In this document: positions 13,527-59,697 of the stretch, piece after piece
Numbering within the stretch: position 1 is the first letter of the stretch
Layout of the letters: each line of letters opens with the position of its first letter
Origin: Trichosphaerium sp. ATCC 40318
Taxonomy: Eukaryota > Protista > Tubulinea
NCBI GenBank assembly: GCA_038496445.1
Contig: JALMLS010000505.1
Location: 82,500 to 146,499, forward strand
Length of the DNA stretch: 64,000 bases
Direction of reading: 5' to 3'
Notes under the pieces: model-generated
Databases searched by the model: none
Seen by the model: the letters and a program-made list of their open reading frames with translations, nothing else
What the model was told of the DNA's origin: nothing
Program-made: the position numbers and the translations under genes

Positions 13527-14497
13527 TTACAAAATTATACTTAACAGTGCTACAAAAGAAACACAAAACAAAAGATTGATAGAATTCAATTTTTGTGAAG
13601 ATGAACCTGGTGGAGTTACAGGAGATTGTGTTGGAATGGCAGTTGGATCTGCTGTTGGTGCAATTGTTGGCGTTACTGTTGATAGTGATATTGGAAACAC
13701 AGGAGCCAAGTTTGTAGGTGGCATACTTGGAGACACTGTTGTTGGCGTTAGTGTTGTAGGAGCTAACGTGGTAGGGCTTAGATTTGTGGGAGTTTGTGTT
13801 GTTGGTATCATTGGAGGTTGAGTGGTTGGAGGTAGCGTGGTTGGAGGTAAAGTTGTAGGAGGTAAAGTGGTTGGAGGTAGCGTGGTTGGAGCTAACGTTG
13901 TAGGAGGTAGAGTGGTTGGAGGGAGCGTGGTTGGAGGTAGAGTGGTTGGAGCTAACGTTGTAGGAGGTAAAGTGGTTGGAGGTAGCGTGGTTGGTGCTAA
14001 TGTTGTATCTATGTTATATTTCACTACAAATAAACCTGGAGGATGGACTGTTGGTGGTATGTCGAAACTATCAAAAAGGTAAACGCCGGCGTCAAAATTT
14101 GGTAATTGCGCACCCGAATGTTGTTGCATTGAAGAAAGGATTTATGGGAGCATTGGTGAAATTAGAAGAAACCAAAGAGATACCTAAGTTAAAGCGTTAG
14201 TTTAGTGATACCTGTGTTGCCATGACACAAAACAGAGAAGGTAATAATAAAATCAAACTAAAAATACTTCACATATTTATTCTAAAACAGTTTAATGTGT
14301 ATACCTTCAACTATTGATGCCTCCATAACACATCTAACAATAACCGGCAAGCTTGCACTTTGCGCAATACTGGCAACGTGTATGCAACAAGAGCGAGGGC
14401 CAACTTGAGCACTGTACTCTATTGATGCATCGGAAACAATAAAATCAGGGTTGTTTGGTTCCGAAAGAATAGTTTCGTTAGTACTTACACCACGCAT
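13527..14497 (-). CDS. Secreted or surface mucin-like Thr/Pro-rich glycoprotein with hydrophobic C-terminus (GPI-signal-like)
   Basis: Spliced model MRG-STVLKLALALVAYT-CVMEASIVEG-ISLVSSNFTNAPINPFFNATTFG-FDIPP..., then (PTTL[P/A])n, ending SSSQKLNSINLLFCVSFVALLSIIL*. Confidence 0.7.
13815..14005 (-). repeat. 15-bp coding minisatellite encoding PTTL(P/A), about 12 units
   Basis: Repeated gtggttggaggtagc / gttgtaggaggtaaa units. Confidence 0.9.
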
Positions 14498-24558: not shown

Positions 24559-25523
24559 ATGGAACCACACGCTAATGGGATAATTGATGGTGATCACATT
24601 CCAATCGAGATATGGGTTACGGTCCTTAATTTTGTACCTGACAAGTACCTACTACGTGTCGAGCTTGTGTGTACTTTATTTTTGTGTATTTTGAGAGATT
24701 ATTTTGGCTGTAAACCGCCTACTGTTGTTAAAAGAATCAACAGCAAGAAACAGTTGAAAAAACTTCATAAACGAAAGAGTTTTTTTCATTTAAACATATG
24801 CCAAGTTGAGATTAATTACGAAATGAAGGCAAAACACTTTAAGAAATATCTGATTGGAGTGTTTTCTATTCGTTGCATTTATAAATGTGTGAATGAGAAC
24901 TTCGTCAAAGCATTGGCTGGAGTTCATACAATTAACCTTTCTGGTACTAGTGTGACAGATGAAGGTGTCAAAGCACTGGCTGGCGTTCATACTATTGATC
25001 TTTCAAGTGCAAGATATGTTACAGATGAAGGTATCAAAGCATTATCAGGTGTTCATACTATTAATCTGTTTTGTACCAAAGTAAAAGATAGAGGTGTCAT
25101 AGCATTGGCCGGAGTTCATACAATTAATCTTTGTTATACTGCTGTTACAGATACAGGTGTCAAAGTATTAGGTGGAGTTCATACAATTAATCTTTTGGCT
25201 ACTAAAGTTACAGATGAAGGGTCAAAGCATTATCAGGTGTTCATACAATTAATCTCTGTAAAACTGGCGTGACAGACGAAGGTATCATAGCATTGGCTGG
25301 AGTTCATTCAATTAATTTGTCCCAAACAGCAGTGACAAATAGAGGTGTCAGAGCATTATCAGGTGTTCATACAATTATTCTTTCTGGTACTAGTGTGACA
25401 CGTGACGGTATTGAAGCATTGGCTGGAGTACGTAAAGTTGACTTTTCTTATACTCCCTTTTATTATTATGATGGTTTCATTAAGTTAACAAATATTACTC
25501 ATGAATTTCTTTACGAACAATGA
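24559..25523 (+). pseudogene. Intronless F-box + 21/22-aa leucine-rich-repeat gene with a 1-nt frameshift
   Basis: F-box DHIPIEIWVTVLNFVPDKYLLRVELVCTLF and ~9 repeats of VHTINLSGTSVTDEGVKALAG. At 25220, gatgaagg-gtcaaagca lacks the T of the repeat consensus gatgaaggtgtcaaagca, splitting ORFs 24559-25272 and 25269-25523. Confidence 0.8.
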
Positions 25524-48092: not shown

Positions 48093-51000
48093 TTACTTTG
48101 TACTTTCAAGAAGAGCTATTTTTGCCAGTAGAATAGTATTCCTCTCCTTTAGGTTAGTGTTGTCTTGCTTTAGATCTTGGACACTTTCCTTGAGGTTAAC
48201 ATTGTCTTGCTTTAGATCCTGGACACTTTCTTTGAGGTTAGCATTGGCTTGCTTTAGATCCTGGACACTTTCGGTGAGGTTAACATTGGCTTGCTTTAGA
48301 TCTTGGACACTTTCCTTGAGGTTGATATTGTCTAGCTTCAGGGTGTTGTTGCTTCCTGTGAGGTCTTTGACACTTTCTGTTAAGTTGGCTTTGTCTTGTT
48401 TTAGGTTATTGATGCTTTCAGTCAATTCAGTAATGTGCTGTTCTCTATTTGCGTTGGCTTTCTGTGAATTCTGATGAAGTTCAGCCAGGCTCTTCTTTAA
48501 TTTCTCTACCTCACTGTTTGATTGTTGTAATTCCAGTTCGGGATTGACATAATTATAACTTGGTTGTTCATCAGTTGAATCATCATGGGCCGCCCACAGT
48601 TTTCTAGTGCAAAGCCTAAGTTTAAAAGAAAGAGACTATGAAATTATACCGGTTAGAAATAAAAGTGTCATCATCAGAATCAGATAGTTCATCATCAGAT
48701 AGCTCACCAGCGGAACCATCAGTATCTGCTTCTGAAGCTTTGTCCTCAATTTGTTCGTTATCGCCTTTCTCTTTCTTTGTCATTTTATCGTCTTTCTTGG
48801 CTTTTTTAGTTTTACGTCTTTTTTTTGTACATTGTTTCTTTGTAACTTTGATGATGTACCGAGCAACAGCTTGAGTATCTAAAACAGTGTTTGAGTACTT
48901 AATCACAATTTTCTAATGTAATGTTGAGTGTACCTTGTGCCACTACCAGCTCATCGTATACTGCATCTTCAAGTTTATCTGGTTTCAGAAGTTTACCCTT
49001 TCGATCTACCAATGCATAGTGACTTTGGTAGCCTGGTTTTATTGGCCTTCCATGCAAACTTTCATTGATGTTTTTGATACCATCCTTACATACGAGGGGA
49101 TCATGCTTTTTATCAAGTAAGTAAAGAATATTCACATCAATATTATTGTTTGCTTACTGGATAAACGTTGCCAGGAGTAACAAGACTTAAAACAAGTGTT
49201 TTTGCGGTTCTTCCTTTCAAATCATATGAAGCAGCATACTTTATGCTTCTCTATCGGCGACAATGAATATTGACCACCTGCAAAAATTGGCTAGTAACGC
49301 ACAGTGAAGTATATCCCTTGACCATAGTAACCAGCATCTAAAGAACTCACAGTTCCAAAACCAGCCTTTACAATACTGTAAGCTGCATCGTTGTTCGTAC
49401 CATGGACCATTAATATCACTGGTAACTAAATAAAACGTTTGTTAATGCAAGAGTACCAAGTAGCATTACCTTATCTTTCTTGGTAGTACGACAATCATTA
49501 AAGGCAGTGAGGGTGTTGTACTTTTGGTACACAGTCTCTTTGTGTTCCTTGTAGATACTTTTTTTCCACTCTTGTTTTTTAAACAACTCGGGCAGTTCTC
49601 TAATATGTGCATGTTAGAATCAAGAAACATCTACGTGGGATAAACGTACTGGTGTCTGTGTTTTAGTATTTCATTGACCCGACCAAAGTTATCTGTCAAG
49701 ATGTCATTGTAAACAAGACTCGCTTCAACGATATTGTATTTGTCATAGCCGTGTAGCTTTGACATCTCCTGTTTGAGAATGTTGAATTCTCTGACAGCCA
49801 CTTTGTCGTTTTTGTCAAGAAGGTTCAGTATTTTGTAGTGTGTCGCCTTTGCAACAATACCTCTTTTTATAATATAAGAATTAATTAAAAAGGCATTGCC
49901 CATACGTGTTGGAGCTATCCCAATTATTTGCAAAATACAATCGCGGATTCAAACTCCATGCGTTTTCGCCTTGTAATCCTTTTGAAACTGTTTTAGTATT
50001 TTATCACATACACACCTTACCTCCAGTACGCTCTTCTTGTAAGTATTCAACATGTTTGTTATTAACCCACGCATCATTGGGCATATCATACAGAATACCT
50101 TGCATTAATTTCCCATCTTGTTTCCAGAAGTCCTGTAGAAAAAAAGTTGTTTGTAGTGTTGAGTTACCGGTGGATATCGTACTGGAGACAATACAACTTT
50201 GGGATCGCATGTAGAACAAATTAAATAACAAATACCTTTATCCATTGCCAGTTTGAAATAATACCGTGTTGGCTGAAGGTTGTGTGATTAGTTTAAGGTA
50301 TTGGCATTCAATAAAGTGTACCAAACGGCAAAGCCATTCTTCAAACTGTTTTCTCTCTTCTACGTTGACATTTTGTGAATAGTGCTTTATACAGTATCTC
50401 CACAGTGCATGGCATTGTTTACCACCTGGACAGTATTTTAAGAAAGTTATGAATTTTTCAACAGCTGAAGGTGTATTTGATATCACTTTTCTAATTAAAA
50501 TGAACATAAAGTCTTGCCATCTTCTTTTGTCCGGAACTACTGCTAACAGTGTTAGCTATTATTTTACCAAATTGTTTTGTAATGTGCCCAATACCTGAAT
50601 CCTTGCTGGTTCCACCATCAATATCAATATTATTTGTGTTAGGTTTGATTAATTTCAACATTTGCATTGAGATATAGTTAAAATCTCAAAACGATAGTGA
50701 GTAAACACAGGTTTTATCTCTTTTGTTATATTACCTGTAGCATAAATCAAAGCTGTATTTCCATATTCATCAACAGCATCAATATTGGCTTTGGCATTGA
50801 TTAACATTGATACAACTTTATTGTGTCCATTTTTTGCTTTAAATAATAATGTGAGTTTGCACTTGTTACTGTATTTCATCATGATTACCTGCATAAATCA
50901 AAGCTGTACTTCCATAGTTATCAACAGCATCAATATTGGCGTTGGCATTGATTAACATTGATACAAATTCATTGTGTCCATTTTTTGCTTTAAATAATAA

Positions 51001-53629
51001 TGTGAGTATGCATACGTTACTGTATTTCATCATAGTTACCTGCATAAATCAAAACTGTATTTCCATATTTATCAACAGCATCAATATTGGTGTTGGCATT
51101 GATTAACATTGATACAATTGCATTGTGTCTATTTTTTGCTTTAAATAATAATGTGAGTATGCATACGTTACTGTATCTCATCATGATTACCTGCATAAAT
51201 CAAAGCTGTCCTTCTATTTTCATCAACAGCCTTAATATTGGTGTTGGCATTGATTAATGTTGATACAACTTCATTGTGTCCATTTTGTGCTTTAAATAAT
51301 AATGTGAGTATGCACATGTATTTGTATCTCATCACGATTACCTGCATAAATCAAAGCTGTATTTCCATATTTATCAACAGCATCAATATTGGCGTTGGCA
51401 TTGATTAACATTGATACAATTTTATTGTGTCCTTCTTGTGCTTTAAATAATAATGTGAGTATGCACTTGTTACTGTATCTCATCATGATTACCTGCATAA
51501 ATCAAAGCTGTCTTTCTATTTTCATTAGCAGCCTCAATATTGGTGTTGGCATTGATTAACATTGATACAACTTTATTGTGTCCATTTTGTGCTTTAAATA
51601 ATAATGTGAGTATGCACTTGTTACTGTATCTCATCATGATTACCTGCATAAATCAAAGCTGTCCTTCCATATTCATCAACAGCATCAATATTGGCGTTGG
51701 CATTGATTAACATTGATACAACTGCATTGTGTCCTTCCTGCGCTTTAAATAATAATGTGAGTATGCATACGTTACTGTATCTCATCATGATTACCTGCAT
51801 AAATCAAAGCTGTACTTCCATAGTTATCAACAGTATCAATATTGGCGTTGGCATTGATTAACATTGATACAACTTTATTGTGTCCATTTTGTGCTTTAAA
51901 TAATAATGTGAGTATGCACTTGTTACTGTATCTCATCACGATTACCTGCATAAATCAAAGCTGTACTTCCATAGTTATCAACAGTATCAATATTGGCGTT
52001 GGCATTGATTAACATTGATACAACTTTATTGTGTCCATTTTGTGCTTTAAATAATAATGTGAGTATGCACTTGTTACTGTATTTCATCACGATTACCTGC
52101 ATAAATCAAAGCTGTCCTTTTATAGTAATCAACAGCCTCAATATTGGCGTTGGCATTGATTAACATTGATACAAATTCATTGTGTCCATTTTTTGCTTTA
52201 AATAATAATGTGAGTATGCACATGTTATTGTATCTCATCATAGTTACCTGCATAAATTAAAATTGTATTTTTATCTTCATCAATATTGGCTTTGGCATTG
52301 ATTAACATTGATACAACTTCATTATGTCCTTTTTGTGCTTTAAATAATAATGTGAGTTTGCACTTGTTACTGTATTTCATCACGATTACCTGCATAAATC
52401 AAAGCTGTACTTCCATCTTCATCAACAGCATCAATATTGGCGTTGGCATTGATTAACATTGATACAATTTTATTGTGTCCATTTTTTGCTTTAAATAATA
52501 ATGTGAGTATGCACATGTTATCGTATCTCATCACGATTACCTGCATAAATCAAAGCTGTCTTTCTATTTTCATCAACAGCATCAATATTGGCGTTGGCAT
52601 TGATTAACATTGATACAATTTTATTGTATCCATTTTTTGCTTTAAATAATGTGAGTATGCACTTGTTATTGTATCTCATCACGATTACCTGCATAAATCA
52701 AAGCTGTCCTTCCATATTCACCAACAGCATCAATATTGGCGTTGGCATTGATTAACATTGATACAATTTTATTGTGTCCTTTTTTTGCTTTAAATAATAA
52801 TGTGAGTATGCACATGTTATTGTATCTCAACTATTACCTGCATAAATCAAAGCTGTACTTCCATATTCACCAACAGCATCAATATTGGCGTTGGCATTGA
52901 TTAACATTGATACAATTTTATTGTGTCCATTTTTTGCTTTAAATAATAATGTGAGTATGCACATGTTATCGTATCTCATCACGATTACCTGCATAAATCA
53001 AAGCTGTATTACCATATTTGTCAACAGCATCAATATTGGCGTTGGCATTGATTAACATTGATACAATCTCATTGTGCCCATAACGTGCTATAAATAATAG
53101 TGTGAGTATGCACTTGTTACTGTATCTCATCATTATTACCTGCATAAATCAAAGCTGTACTTCCATATTTATCAACAGCATCAATATTGGCGTTGGCATT
53201 GATTAACATTGATACAACTTTATTGTGTCCATTTTTTGCTTTAAATAATAATGTGAGTATGCACATGTTATCGTATCTCATCACGATTACCTGCATAAAT
53301 CAAAGCTGTATTTCCATAGTTACCAACAGCATCAATATTGGCGTTGGCATTGATTAACATTGATACAATTTTATTATCTCCTTTTTGTGCTTTAAATAAT
53401 GTGAGTATGCACTTGTTACCGTATTTCATCATGATTACCTGCATAAATCAAAGCTGTATTTCCATAGTTATCAACAGCATCAATATTGGTGTTGGCATTG
53501 ATTAACATTGATACAACTTTATTGTCTCTATTTTTTGCTTTAAATAATAATGTGAGTATGCACATGTTATTGTATCTCATCATAATTACCTGCATAAATC
53601 AAAGTTACTTCACTTTGTGATTCTGTCAT
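48093..53629 (-). CDS. Ankyrin-array (19 repeats) + PARP-type ADP-ribosyltransferase domain + Lys/acidic linker + C-terminal coiled coil
   Basis: Continuous in-frame splicing traced by eye from ATG 53629 (MTESQSEVTLIYA) through 19 ankyrin exons and linker exons to LPVILMVHGTNNDAAYSIVKAGFGTVSSLDAGYYGQGIYFT/RSIKYAASY..LVLSLVTPGNVYP..GYQSHY..VYDELVVAQ/DTQAVARYII, then (KESVQDLKQDNVNL)n and the stop at 48093. Confidence 0.85.
48140..48420 (-). repeat. 42-bp coding tandem repeat (14-aa, double-heptad coiled coil)
   Basis: About 4 near-identical units tgctttagatc[ct]tggacacttt..gaggtt plus degenerate flanking units, encoding (K/T)ESVQDLKQ(D/A)NxNL. Confidence 0.9.
50735..53604 (-). repeat. Tandem array of ~151-bp units (99-nt ankyrin exon + 52-nt intron): 19 complete units plus 1 partial
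   Basis: acctgcataaatcaaagc recurs at ~50887, 51038, 51189, 51340, 51491, 51642, 51793, 51944, 52095, 52246, 52388, 52539, 52687, 52836, 52987, 53138, 53289, 53437 and 53588. Minus-strand intron consensus gtaatcatgatgagatacagtaacaagtgcatactcacattattatttaaag. Confidence 0.95.
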
Positions 53630-57444: not shown

Positions 57445-59038
57445 CATATTTGTGTTACCGTTCAAAATGCATATTTGCTGTGCTCAGGTTATTATTTGCC
57501 GTGCTTCACGTGTTTGCAGTAATTTTGAAAAGAGAGACTTGTTCGAACGCTTTTCATGCGTAAGCAGATTGTTTGATCACTTTTTAAAACTGTTTTGGTC
57601 GAGAAAAAAACACTAAAGGACATTCAAGTGCTTTAAATACTTCAATTCATTACGTTGTGAGCCCTTGCTGCAGTTAATGCGTTAGTCTTGTTACAAACTT
57701 GTTGCCACCTCCACTGCGAGTTGCTCAATGTACGATAGCTGTACGTGACATCTAAAAATCGTAGATGAAACCAGCATAGAAACAAAATAAAGAATAAAAT
57801 CTCCACCGCTGATGAACAGATACACAGCACAACGTTCTTGTATTTTGGCGTCCGGTTCTCGTTATAATTCTGTCTGGTTTCAATAACGACATTATGATAA
57901 CACCCTTTGTGTTCGCTGGGCGGGGTAAAAAATAGCCCGCAAAACGCCACTATCAAGCAACAAAGTTGAGTGAGGTATTCGCTACTATTTGGTGAAATAT
58001 TTGAAAAACCTTTTCGAACTACACTTTTTTTCTGCCCGTGTGACGGTTATATAGTCGCGTAAGGTTACCACCTCACTCCGTTAGTGACTGTTATTTACGC
58101 TTTTGGCGTAGTGGTTTAGTATGCGTATTTATAAATGGTCGTATTTTTACAGTGCTTGTGGTTGGTAAATGTCGTGAAAAATGCGGCCTAGATAGGCTCT
58201 GTGGCTGTACAAATCAGATATGCGTACAGTGCAATGCAGCCGAACTCAGTATTGCTTCTATGGAGACTGCAAGCAAGTTTTGTAGAGCATTTCACGTTGA
58301 TACCTGCTTCTTACCTTGCAGGATGTTTACTTTACCCTGTGGTACTACAACCATAGGATGACTCAAAGACTCGTAATCAACAGTACTGTCACCTGTAAGT
58401 AATATCAGTTAATTTAATTGATAACTGGTATCGTTTCTACTACTTGTACATCAGAGGAATAGCGTGATTCTGTAATATACACATCTTAAAACACGTTTCT
58501 CAGATAAAATATAGATTTGCAATTGGCCTTGTTTCATATGTCAACTGCATTGAGCTTAGAAGTTGCACAAAGGTGGATATCAATGTATGCTGATAGTACT
58601 CAAATTACTAATGTTCACTTGTCTAACGCACAAGTTCAATTATCTCAACTAAACACATTAACGTATGATGAAACTATCAGAAACAGTCACATGTATCGCT
58701 GGAGCACTCTGTGAAGGTACTTACATACTTAGCGTATAAGACTTCAATCCAAACAAACAGCATAGCTCAGTGCTTGTTCTATTTCCATCAGTGGTGGCGC
58801 GCTTAAGTACTTGTGAGAAATCCAGAAAAGATTGACAATGAAATATTGTATTGAAACCAAGTCTGTGTTATGATGCGCTACGAAGAGAACAATGAGTAAG
58901 TAAAATGCTTTATTTGTGCGAATGAATATTGGCAACGTGTTGCTGATAGTGGAGCCTACTTGTTTCTTTACGCAAGTAGAGTGGCATGTCTCTCTTGTAG
59001 GCCAGGTAGGCTTTTCCTTTCGGTAATATTATCTTGCT

Positions 59039-59665
59039 TTAGGTGGCATTGCTTTTGGATAAGTTGACAATATCTTTCTTCAGGTTTTTGATGCTTTCTT
59101 TAATGATGGTATTGCTTTCTGTTAATTTGACATTGTCGTCCTTCAAGTCATTGACACATTCTGTCAACTTGATATTGTCTTGCTGTAGGTTGTTGCCACT
59201 TTCTGTTAGGCTGGCATTGTCTCGCTTCAGGTCGGCATTGTTTTCTGCTACTTTTGCTTTCTGTAATTGTATGTCGAGATATACATCATTGCTAGTTGAT
59301 TGCTGGTCATCAGTTGAATCCACATGGGCATCCCATAGTTTTCTAGTACAACAGCGTAAGTTTAAATAAGCAAAAGATGTGACTTCTTACCGGTTGCTAG
59401 TAAACTTGTCATTAGAGTCGGAGAGGTCATCTGTCTTCGGGTTTATTTGTATTTTTTGTTTTTTTCGTTTGGGAATCTTTTGGTACAACTTTAATGATGC
59501 AACGAGCAACAGCTTGATTATCTAAAAGGCGAGTTATAATACAATTTTTGTAATTTCTAGTACCTTGAGCAACAACAAGCTCATCGTACACCGCATGAGA
59601 TACTCTATTTTCTTTGAGAGGTCTACCTAAGCGATCTACCAATATGACTTTGGTAGCCTGTTGTC
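59039..59665 (-). pseudogene. 5'-truncated paralog of the PARP/coiled-coil gene at 48093-53629
   Basis: GYQSH(frameshift)LVDRLGRPLKENRVSHAVYDELVVAQ, NQAVARCIIKV, TRKLWDAHVDSTDDQQ and degenerate 14-aa heptads. Intron positions match the intact copy; no HGT/GIYF part upstream. Confidence 0.8.
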
Positions 59666-59697
59666 CTCTTAACTTCTTTTCTCTTTCTTTACTCCCG

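Follow-up and report, generated by a model that had tools for sequence, protein, structure and literature searches.

Does a tandem array of nearly identical ankyrin exons, differing from one another at a handful of positions, represent a recognition surface that diversifies under selection, or a repeat in which a few tolerant sites have simply drifted? The question is raised by a minus-strand gene of the marine protist Trichosphaerium sp. ATCC 40318, located in a stretch of 64,000 nucleotides of contig JALMLS010000505.1 (the window; all coordinates are positions within it). The gene encodes 19 ankyrin repeats, each on its own exon, upstream of a predicted PARP-type ADP-ribosyltransferase domain. 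A sequence-only reading had proposed that amino-acid variation concentrates at the positions randomised in designed ankyrin repeat proteins (DARPins), and that diversifying selection and gene conversion between units act on a ligand-binding surface. Our preferred explanation, which we hold to be probable by a modest degree, is that the array is the recognition domain of an intact ankyrin-PARP gene, with a constrained scaffold, freely varying surface patches and exchange between units, and with diversifying selection likely but unproven.

The gene model is intact, with 31 exons, a coding sequence of 3,939 nucleotides, 1,312 amino acids, no internal stops and GT-AG ends at all 30 introns. The domain order is ankyrin array, degenerate cap, Cys/His-rich helical linker, PARP-type catalytic domain, Lys/Asp/Glu-rich stretch and coiled coil. 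The parts of the gene are the following, with the basis of each assignment in brackets where one applies.

53590..53629, minus strand: exon 1, with the inferred start codon (ATG at 53629) and the partial repeat MTESQSEVTLIYA (ATG-led open frame running into a GT donor)
50735..53537, minus strand: array of 19 ankyrin exons (Tandem Repeats Finder, TRF; exon/intron parsing and translation; Pfam Ank on single exons; RNA joints)
53537-53439, 53389-53291, 53238-53140, 53087-52989, 52936-52838, minus strand: ankyrin exons 1-5 of the array
52787-52689, 52639-52541, 52488-52390, 52337-52248, 52195-52097, minus strand: ankyrin exons 6-10 of the array
52044-51946, 51893-51795, 51742-51644, 51591-51493, 51440-51342, minus strand: ankyrin exons 11-15 of the array
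51289-51191, 51138-51040, 50987-50889, 50836-50735, minus strand: ankyrin exons 16-19 of the array
50595..50684, minus strand: degenerate capping repeat exon, 90 nucleotides, phase 1-1 (inferred from GT-AG boundaries and open frame)
50542-50322, 50272-50183, 50132-50021, 49914-49650, minus strand: Cys/His-rich and helical linker, four exons (collinear with the transcript-derived protein P0001)
49599-49470, 49425-49303 (HGT, GIYF), 49238-49158, 49105-48934 (YDEL), minus strand: PARP-type ADP-ribosyltransferase catalytic exons (motifs; identity to P0001 and P0002)
48878-48650, minus strand: Lys/Asp/Glu-rich exon (RNA joint 48650/48603)
48603-48093, minus strand: coiled-coil exon with 14-amino-acid repeats, stop included (42-nucleotide repeat in TRF; coiled-coil Pfam matches)

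The last 635 residues of the model align end to end with P0001 (590 amino acids) at 58% identity. Nine RNA contigs match the gene at 99% identity or more. Joints in contigs from a public run fall exactly at predicted exon ends (49650, 49105, 48650/48603, 52989, 50836, 51342, 51644, 52390 and others), and RNA contigs back the linker introns 50321-50273 and 50182-50133. These joints show that the gene is transcribed, and spliced in the way the model predicts.

Some RNA contigs depart from this exon chain. One contig without mismatches joins donor 49650 straight to acceptor 49105 and omits three exons, including those with the HGT and GIYF motifs. The joint shifts the frame and leads to a stop about 22 codons on, and this transcript may be a non-productive or regulatory isoform. 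Another contig fuses the end of ankyrin exon 4 (52989) to the start of exon 19 (50836), omitting 2,152 nucleotides with canonical ends, and further contigs go back inside the ankyrin array. Such joints within the array could stem from skipped exons, from a shorter allele in the RNA source, or from paralogous contigs placed on the best-matching units.

The repeat unit is highly regular. TRF reports one array at 50740-53611 with a period of 151, 19.1 copies and 89% matches. Each unit on the minus strand consists of a 99-nucleotide exon, encoding one ankyrin repeat of 33 amino acids, and a GT..AG intron of 49-52 nucleotides. All 19 exons are in phase 1-1, and the introns share the donor GTAA(T/C), the acceptor TTTA(A/T)AG and a conserved ACTCAC box 5' of the acceptor. 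Two exons depart from the standard length. Exon 9 (52248..52337, 90 nucleotides) is the sole unit with a 9-nucleotide in-frame deletion, which costs it consensus positions 32, 33 and 1 and leaves a shorter hairpin loop. With 11-17 differences from each of the others, exon 9 is also the most divergent of the units. Exon 19 (102 nucleotides) has one additional codon. Mean pairwise identity among units is 79% for amino acids (range 63-100%) and 90% for DNA, and 18 of the 19 exons are distinct. Similarity between units is independent of their distance along the array. A higher-order repeat or a neighbour effect was considered and rejected, as the mean difference between units stays constant across lags.

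Single exons are recognised by Pfam (clan CL0465) as Ank PF00023 (24.3 and 23.2 bits, cut-off 21.1) and Ank_4 (29.6 and 24.9 bits, cut-off 22.7). Exon residues 2-22 align with positions 12-32 of the PF00023 profile. Exon codons 2 and 3 therefore correspond to consensus positions 13 and 14, and codons 24, 25 and 27 to consensus positions 2, 3 and 5. This register is the one that the sequence-only reading had used. The array of the transcript relative L001 matches ankyrin-1/2 structures with E = 1e-54. AlphaFold2 run without an alignment on the seven-repeat array of L001 (2-694) returned an all-beta solenoid, in five models with pLDDT (predicted local distance difference test) from 79 down to 37. 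We judged this fold an artefact that conflicts with the ankyrin homology. An all-beta prediction for a genuine ankyrin array shows that single-sequence models of homogenised repeats need to be treated with care.

Variation within the units is strongly uneven. The amino acid never changes at 15 of the 33 codons, and 30 of the 43 exon nucleotide variants lie within 11 codons (exon codons 2-5, 7, 8 and 23-27), with binomial p = 1e-6 for this set, which was picked post hoc. The DARPin positions that Binz and colleagues reportedly randomised in 2003 (x positions 2, 3, 5, 13, 14 and 33) provide six codons chosen a priori. These hold 15 of the 43 nucleotide variants (p = 0.007), and amino-acid entropy is higher there than elsewhere (Mann-Whitney p = 0.0008). 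The concentration of variation is clearly not due to chance. Ranked by entropy from the highest, the consensus positions are 5, 2, 19, 14, 18, 13, 3, 4, 1 and 16, so that five of the six DARPin positions (2, 3, 5, 13 and 14) stand among the top seven. The correspondence proposed by the sequence-only reading holds for these five and fails for position 33, which is near-invariant (V in 17 of 18 units); positions 4, 16, 18, 19 and 28 vary outside the DARPin set. Position 19 (V/I/F) looks more like a core-packing residue than a contact. Taken with these extras, the predicted assignment of the variation to binding-surface positions appears largely right. In L001, whose seven repeats share this register, positions 2, 3, 5, 13, 14 and several others vary, and position-wise variability is correlated between the two arrays (Spearman rho = 0.38, p = 0.03).

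Every turn variant named beforehand is present (DKYGN, DEYGN, DNYGS, DNYGN, DENRK, DENRR, DYYKR, GEYGS, GEYGR, DEYGR, DEDGS, DEDKN and GNYGN), and DKYGS and NENRK can be added to the list. The same is true of the helix ends (AKN/AQE/AQN/AQK/ARY/AKK, followed by NKV/NKI/NEV/NEF/NAV/NAI/NEI), and the turn DKYGN does occur in three helix contexts, with ARYGHNEI in exon 4, AQEGHNKI in exon 15 and AKNRHNAI in exon 17. The number of residues at each variable position is limited to 3-4.

The introns provide a yardstick for these patches. Diversity per nucleotide is 0.179 in exon codons 2-8, 0.246 in codons 23-27 and 0.033 in the scaffold, and it reaches 0.16 at intron positions 5-28 and 0.017 at intron positions 29-52. 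Whole exons and whole introns have values of 0.096 and 0.082, respectively. Split by class of site, pairwise diversity comes to 0.054 (synonymous), 0.108 (non-synonymous) and 0.082 (introns), and to 0.245 at the non-synonymous sites of the 11 variable codons. The scaffold synonymous sites and the 3' half of the intron (positions 29-52) are near-invariant across units over 50735-53590. Constraint at the nucleotide level or homogenisation would produce such invariance, with splicing signals, codon bias and the maintenance of homology as candidates.

Mosaicism among the units is pervasive. Of the pairs formed by the 32 informative sites, 53% show all four gametes and so fail that test, and Rmin, the lower bound on recombination events, is 16. 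Within an exon, distances over the 5' patch and over the 3' patch are uncorrelated (Mantel r = -0.07), and so are those of the turn patch and the intron 20 nucleotides downstream (r = -0.10). Weak linkage is found only between the preceding intron and the 5' patch (r = 0.27, p = 0.04). Individual units illustrate the pattern. Units 10 and 18 both begin the intron with the rare CTA and end the helix with the rare NEF, but five intron positions lying between these two features differ. In units 9 and 19, a shared rare base of the intron and a shared Lys at codon 16 flank five nucleotides of the 5' patch at which the two units differ. Multi-nucleotide turn haplotypes, such as the one encoding ENRK, recur on different backgrounds. 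Of Sawyer's statistics, the sum of squared condensed fragments (SSCF) gives p = 0.021 and the maximal condensed fragment (MCF) p = 0.2.

Whether selection drives the diversity is harder to establish. Site models were run with our own codon-likelihood program on two trees. The one-ratio model M0 yields an omega (dN/dS, the ratio of non-synonymous to synonymous rates) of 1.9-2.1, and the comparisons of M2a with M1a and of M8 with M7/M8a place an omega of about 5 on one third of the codons (twice the log-likelihood difference, 2dl, 20-23; p ~1e-5). Exon codons 2, 5, 7, 8, 24, 26 and 27 exceed an M2a posterior of 0.9 on both trees, and codons 3 and 17 on one tree only. An omega above 1 is favoured in every model fitted. 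The M2a/M8 signal is weakened by heterogeneity of the synonymous rate, by variant counts, by frequency spectra and by synonymous constraint on the scaffold. A dual-rate model with a class-specific synonymous rate gives an omega of 2.0 or 3.1 on the two trees, with p = 0.08 or 0.015. In neutral dual-rate simulations (n = 32) the M1a/M2a comparison was significant at the 5% level in 62% of the data sets (median omega 2.2), and no simulated likelihood ratio reached the observed 20.2; this null was simulated without recombination, which makes the borderline p-values optimistic if anything.

Counts of distinct variants point lower. In the exons, 77.4 non-synonymous sites carry 32 variants and 20.7 synonymous sites carry 11, which gives a dN/dS of 0.78 overall; the value is about 0.7 both in the patch and in the scaffold. 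The earlier observation that changes are mostly non-synonymous is correct as a count (74%), and this proportion is also the expectation under random mutation because 79% of sites are non-synonymous. Synonymous variants are concentrated in the variable codons (7 on 5.5 sites versus 4 on 15.2 sites). Frequency spectra are alike for non-synonymous variants (23 shared, 9 single) and intron variants (11 shared, 5 single; p = 1.0). The synonymous variants stand apart, as 1 is shared and the other 10 are single (p = 0.0004 versus non-synonymous, 0.005 versus intron). Synonymous sites differ from L001 by 0.26 over the ankyrin part, against 0.525 over the remainder of the gene, and the scaffold codons ACA, TTG, ATT, GCA and TTA are the same in both. 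Synonymous sites of the scaffold are thus constrained, and the exon dS underestimates the neutral rate, which inflates omega. Set against the variable intron half, the exon patches show an excess that is not significant (p = 0.13; p = 0.08 with codon positions 1 and 2 only). We place the omega of the patch codons somewhere between 1 and 3. Selection for diversity is plausible rather than shown, and the proof of selection over relaxed constraint is weak. The proposal of diversifying selection, including its site-wise check under M8, would be confirmed by the M2a/M8 models if these stood by themselves; it is borderline under the dual-rate model, and the variant counts and the comparison with the intron come out about neutral.

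In our preferred explanation, the ankyrin array behaves as a tandem repeat under concerted evolution. Its variation is almost wholly contained in three short patches per unit, one in the intron (its 5' half), one at codons 2-8, where helix 1 ends and helix 2 begins, and one in the beta-turn at codons 23-27. Five of the six contact positions of DARPins fall within the two exon patches, which suggests that the variable residues most likely form a ligand-facing surface. Patch variants occur in nearly all combinations, which points to repeated exchange from unit to unit, by unequal crossover or short-tract conversion, to which some recurrent mutation was probably added. Patch codons change at about the neutral rate of the intron or modestly faster (omega ~1-3), so that the data show a binding surface free to vary on a strongly constrained scaffold. 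The anatomy, the splicing, the concentration of variation, the mosaicism and the constraint on synonymous scaffold sites are shown directly, and from there we infer ligand binding, inter-unit exchange as the shuffling mechanism and any adaptive role. Several points weigh against it. The data are one array of 19 x 33 codons, and the trees are poorly supported. Tests that draw on the spatial order of sites to tell recombination from recurrent mutation are weak; besides the Sawyer values, the pairwise homoplasy index (PHI) gives p = 0.05-0.2, mostly non-significant across window sizes. All four combinations are found even at adjacent nucleotides, some of them CpG, which is hard to obtain from conversion tracts alone and suggests a contribution of recurrent mutation; such mutation, for example at CpG sites of the intron, could explain part of the incompatibility. 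Positions 18, 19 and 28 are not known contact positions, and the placement of the variable residues on the concave face comes entirely from the register and the literature. The interpretation given by the sequence-only reading is partly supported. On this single array, selection and recombination are both plausible, and neither is demonstrated or holds up under tests that accommodate rate heterogeneity, constrained synonymous sites and mosaicism.

A bolder account would have strong diversifying selection (omega well above 1) act on the binding surface while gene conversion shuffles the variants, making the array an adaptive recognition repertoire. The omega of about 5 that M2a and M8 assign to about one third of the codons argues for it, as do the likelihood ratio above all 32 neutral dual-rate simulations, the shared exon variants, which are non-synonymous in all but one case, and changes that alter charge and size at surface-type positions. 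The same account has to absorb the fall of omega to 2-3 (p = 0.015-0.08) once the synonymous rate varies by class, the dN/dS of 0.78 by distinct variants, a patch diversity not significantly above that of the variable intron half, and a dS underestimated at constrained scaffold sites. Tree-based counts would moreover be inflated if the mosaicism reflects recombination. We regard strong selection as possible, and as clearly the less probable of the two explanations. A purely neutral history makes the opposite demand on the data. A few diverged founder units would have been amplified recently, with unconstrained patches, no ongoing exchange and no selection for diversity. The variant-count dN/dS of about 0.7-0.8 in patch and scaffold, the identical spectra of non-synonymous and intron variants, and the similar diversity of exon and intron patches are all consistent with such a history. 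It sits poorly with 18 of 19 exons being distinct, patches that assort almost freely, an Rmin of 16, and a similarity that neither depends on distance nor forms higher-order blocks. Shared synonymous variants are also nearly absent (1) where about 4 are expected from the density in introns. We consider this history unlikely.

Mutagenesis directed at the patches, either at adenines as in diversity-generating retroelements or by another form of local hypermutation, would account for the enrichment of synonymous variants in patch codons (7 on 5.5 sites versus 4 on 15.2 sites), and the patches are A-rich. Adenine is not enriched in the variable columns, however (14/37 versus 24/62, odds ratio 0.96, p = 1.0), and the adenine-directed form was rejected for this lack of base bias. 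Neither a template repeat nor a reverse transcriptase was seen in the parts of the window examined, where no dedicated search for them was made, and the same variants recur as multi-nucleotide haplotypes of common descent, such as GAAAATAGAAAG. Targeted mutagenesis of any kind is thus very improbable. Hardly more credible is an assembly artefact, in which collapsed or mis-joined repeats would create apparent variants. Tandem arrays are difficult to assemble, and the RNA joints that skip or go back inside the array could be read in this way. Against an artefact stand the frame and 30 GT-AG introns preserved over 31 exons, the nine closely matching RNA contigs, and variants that are structured and unlike random errors.

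A predicted enzyme domain lies at the other end of the protein. The catalytic motifs HGT, GIYF and YDEL are found at model residues 949, 978 and 1059 and supply the H-Y-E triad of PARP enzymes. The exon 49425-49303 is 90% identical to P0001 and P0002, and P0001 matches Pfam PARP PF00644 with 30.9 bits (cut-off 26.7). The separate PARP exons of the window have no Pfam match individually, and the PARP part has no match among solved structures in PDB (phmmer, E <= 0.001). The C-terminal domain is a predicted PARP-type ADP-ribosyltransferase, as judged from motifs and homology. An exhaustive phmmer search of 1.84 billion representative proteins returned only two true relatives, both transcript contigs from one Joint Genome Institute (JGI) sample and both carrying PF00644. 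The family is therefore rare in public protein data. A metagenome scan yielded distant PARP domains only (35-42% identity), none close enough for a comparison of arrays, and a literature search for a described ankyrin-PARP protist family found nothing specific. A partial paralogue lies nearby.

58971..59675, minus strand: neighbouring partial paralogue, with the last PARP exon and the coiled coil only (C-terminal third; tblastn with window exons and P0001/P0002)

No ankyrin exons are present upstream of this paralogue inside the window, and it probably represents a 3' fragment of a gene.

Among published systems, the repeat domains (ANK, TPR or WD repeats) of fungal NOD-like receptors (NLRs), which belong to the STAND proteins, come closest. 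In Podospora, five concave-face positions of highly conserved ankyrin repeats are under positive selection; polymorphism of repeat number has been shown and concerted evolution by reshuffling of repeats proposed (Dyrka et al. 2014, PMC4986451). The array described here resembles these domains in its near-identical tandem ankyrin repeats, its few variable positions and its architecture of recognition plus effector. The fungal study set a threshold for conserved repeats, an internal amino-acid identity of 85% or more across 100 residues or more, and the mean of 79% here falls short of it. Fungal NLRs carry a NACHT or NB-ARC domain, and none is found in Pfam scans of the non-repeat open reading frames and of P0001; the effector here is instead a C-terminal PARP-type domain with a coiled coil. 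Fungal NLR repeats have been analysed as contiguous coding repeats, in contrast to one repeat per exon with homogenised introns here, and the host is a marine protist.

Other systems share parts of the design. Engineered ankyrin libraries randomise positions of the beta-turn and of helix 1, which make up the concave binding surface (PMC4308713, PMC8229355). The array has in common with DARPin and ANK-N5C libraries a fixed scaffold of 33 amino acids and diversity at positions 2, 3, 5, 13 and 14. It differs as a natural array in which position 33 is not variable and positions 4, 16, 18, 19 and 28 are, with 19 repeats rather than the 2-5 of DARPins and only 3-4 residues at each variable position. 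Tankyrases (ANK - SAM - PARP) likewise combine an N-terminal ankyrin array with a C-terminal H-Y-E PARP domain. The SAM domain that lies between array and PARP in tankyrases has no match in the Pfam scans of the non-repeat open reading frames and of P0001, and our protein has a coiled coil instead. Tankyrase repeats form diverged ankyrin repeat clusters (ARCs), unlike the homogenised repeats here, and the family described here appears to be multi-copy and lineage-specific. Modular repeat cassettes also combine into binding diversity in the leucine-rich repeats (LRRs) of lamprey variable lymphocyte receptors (VLRs) and in the alternative exons of Dscam. Unlike in these systems, there is no evidence here of somatic assembly or regulated mutually exclusive splicing, and the RNA contig joining exon 4 to exon 19 is the sole hint.

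The window contains other repetitive coding sequences, which are listed here for completeness.

24559-25429, plus strand: tandem repeats of 63 nucleotides (21 amino acids), leucine-rich repeats of the RNI-like LRR_6 type, in an open reading frame adjoining a malic-enzyme fragment; a second repeat-protein gene in the window
13811-13994: tandem repeat of 15/30 nucleotides within a minus-strand open reading frame of 200 amino acids with a weak extensin-like (proline-rich) match

The behaviour of this array has consequences for how selection is read from repeats of its kind. With scaffold synonymous sites that are not neutral and units that are mosaic, textbook site models overstate selection in such arrays. 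Claims on the family call for tests that allow a variable dS and account for recombination, and for intron yardsticks across many paralogues. Homogenised repeats with few hypervariable surface positions are a hallmark of fast-diversifying recognition domains in fungal NLRs. If the same holds in a marine protist, this form of receptor evolution would extend to a new lineage and a new output enzyme, here joined to exons of a single repeat, frozen introns and a PARP-type effector. A more speculative and rather doubtful extension is that the array is a member of a large protist-specific repertoire of recognition enzymes. Symmetric exons of one repeat each, with their homogenised introns, would then serve as cassettes whose patches are often exchanged within and between paralogous arrays, possibly with exon skipping at the RNA level, and with binding diversity generated and kept under selection and the ADP-ribosyltransferase aimed at changing targets such as viruses or parasites. 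Should this be true, the family would represent innate immune receptors with a scaffold, an effector and a gene architecture unlike those of NLRs.

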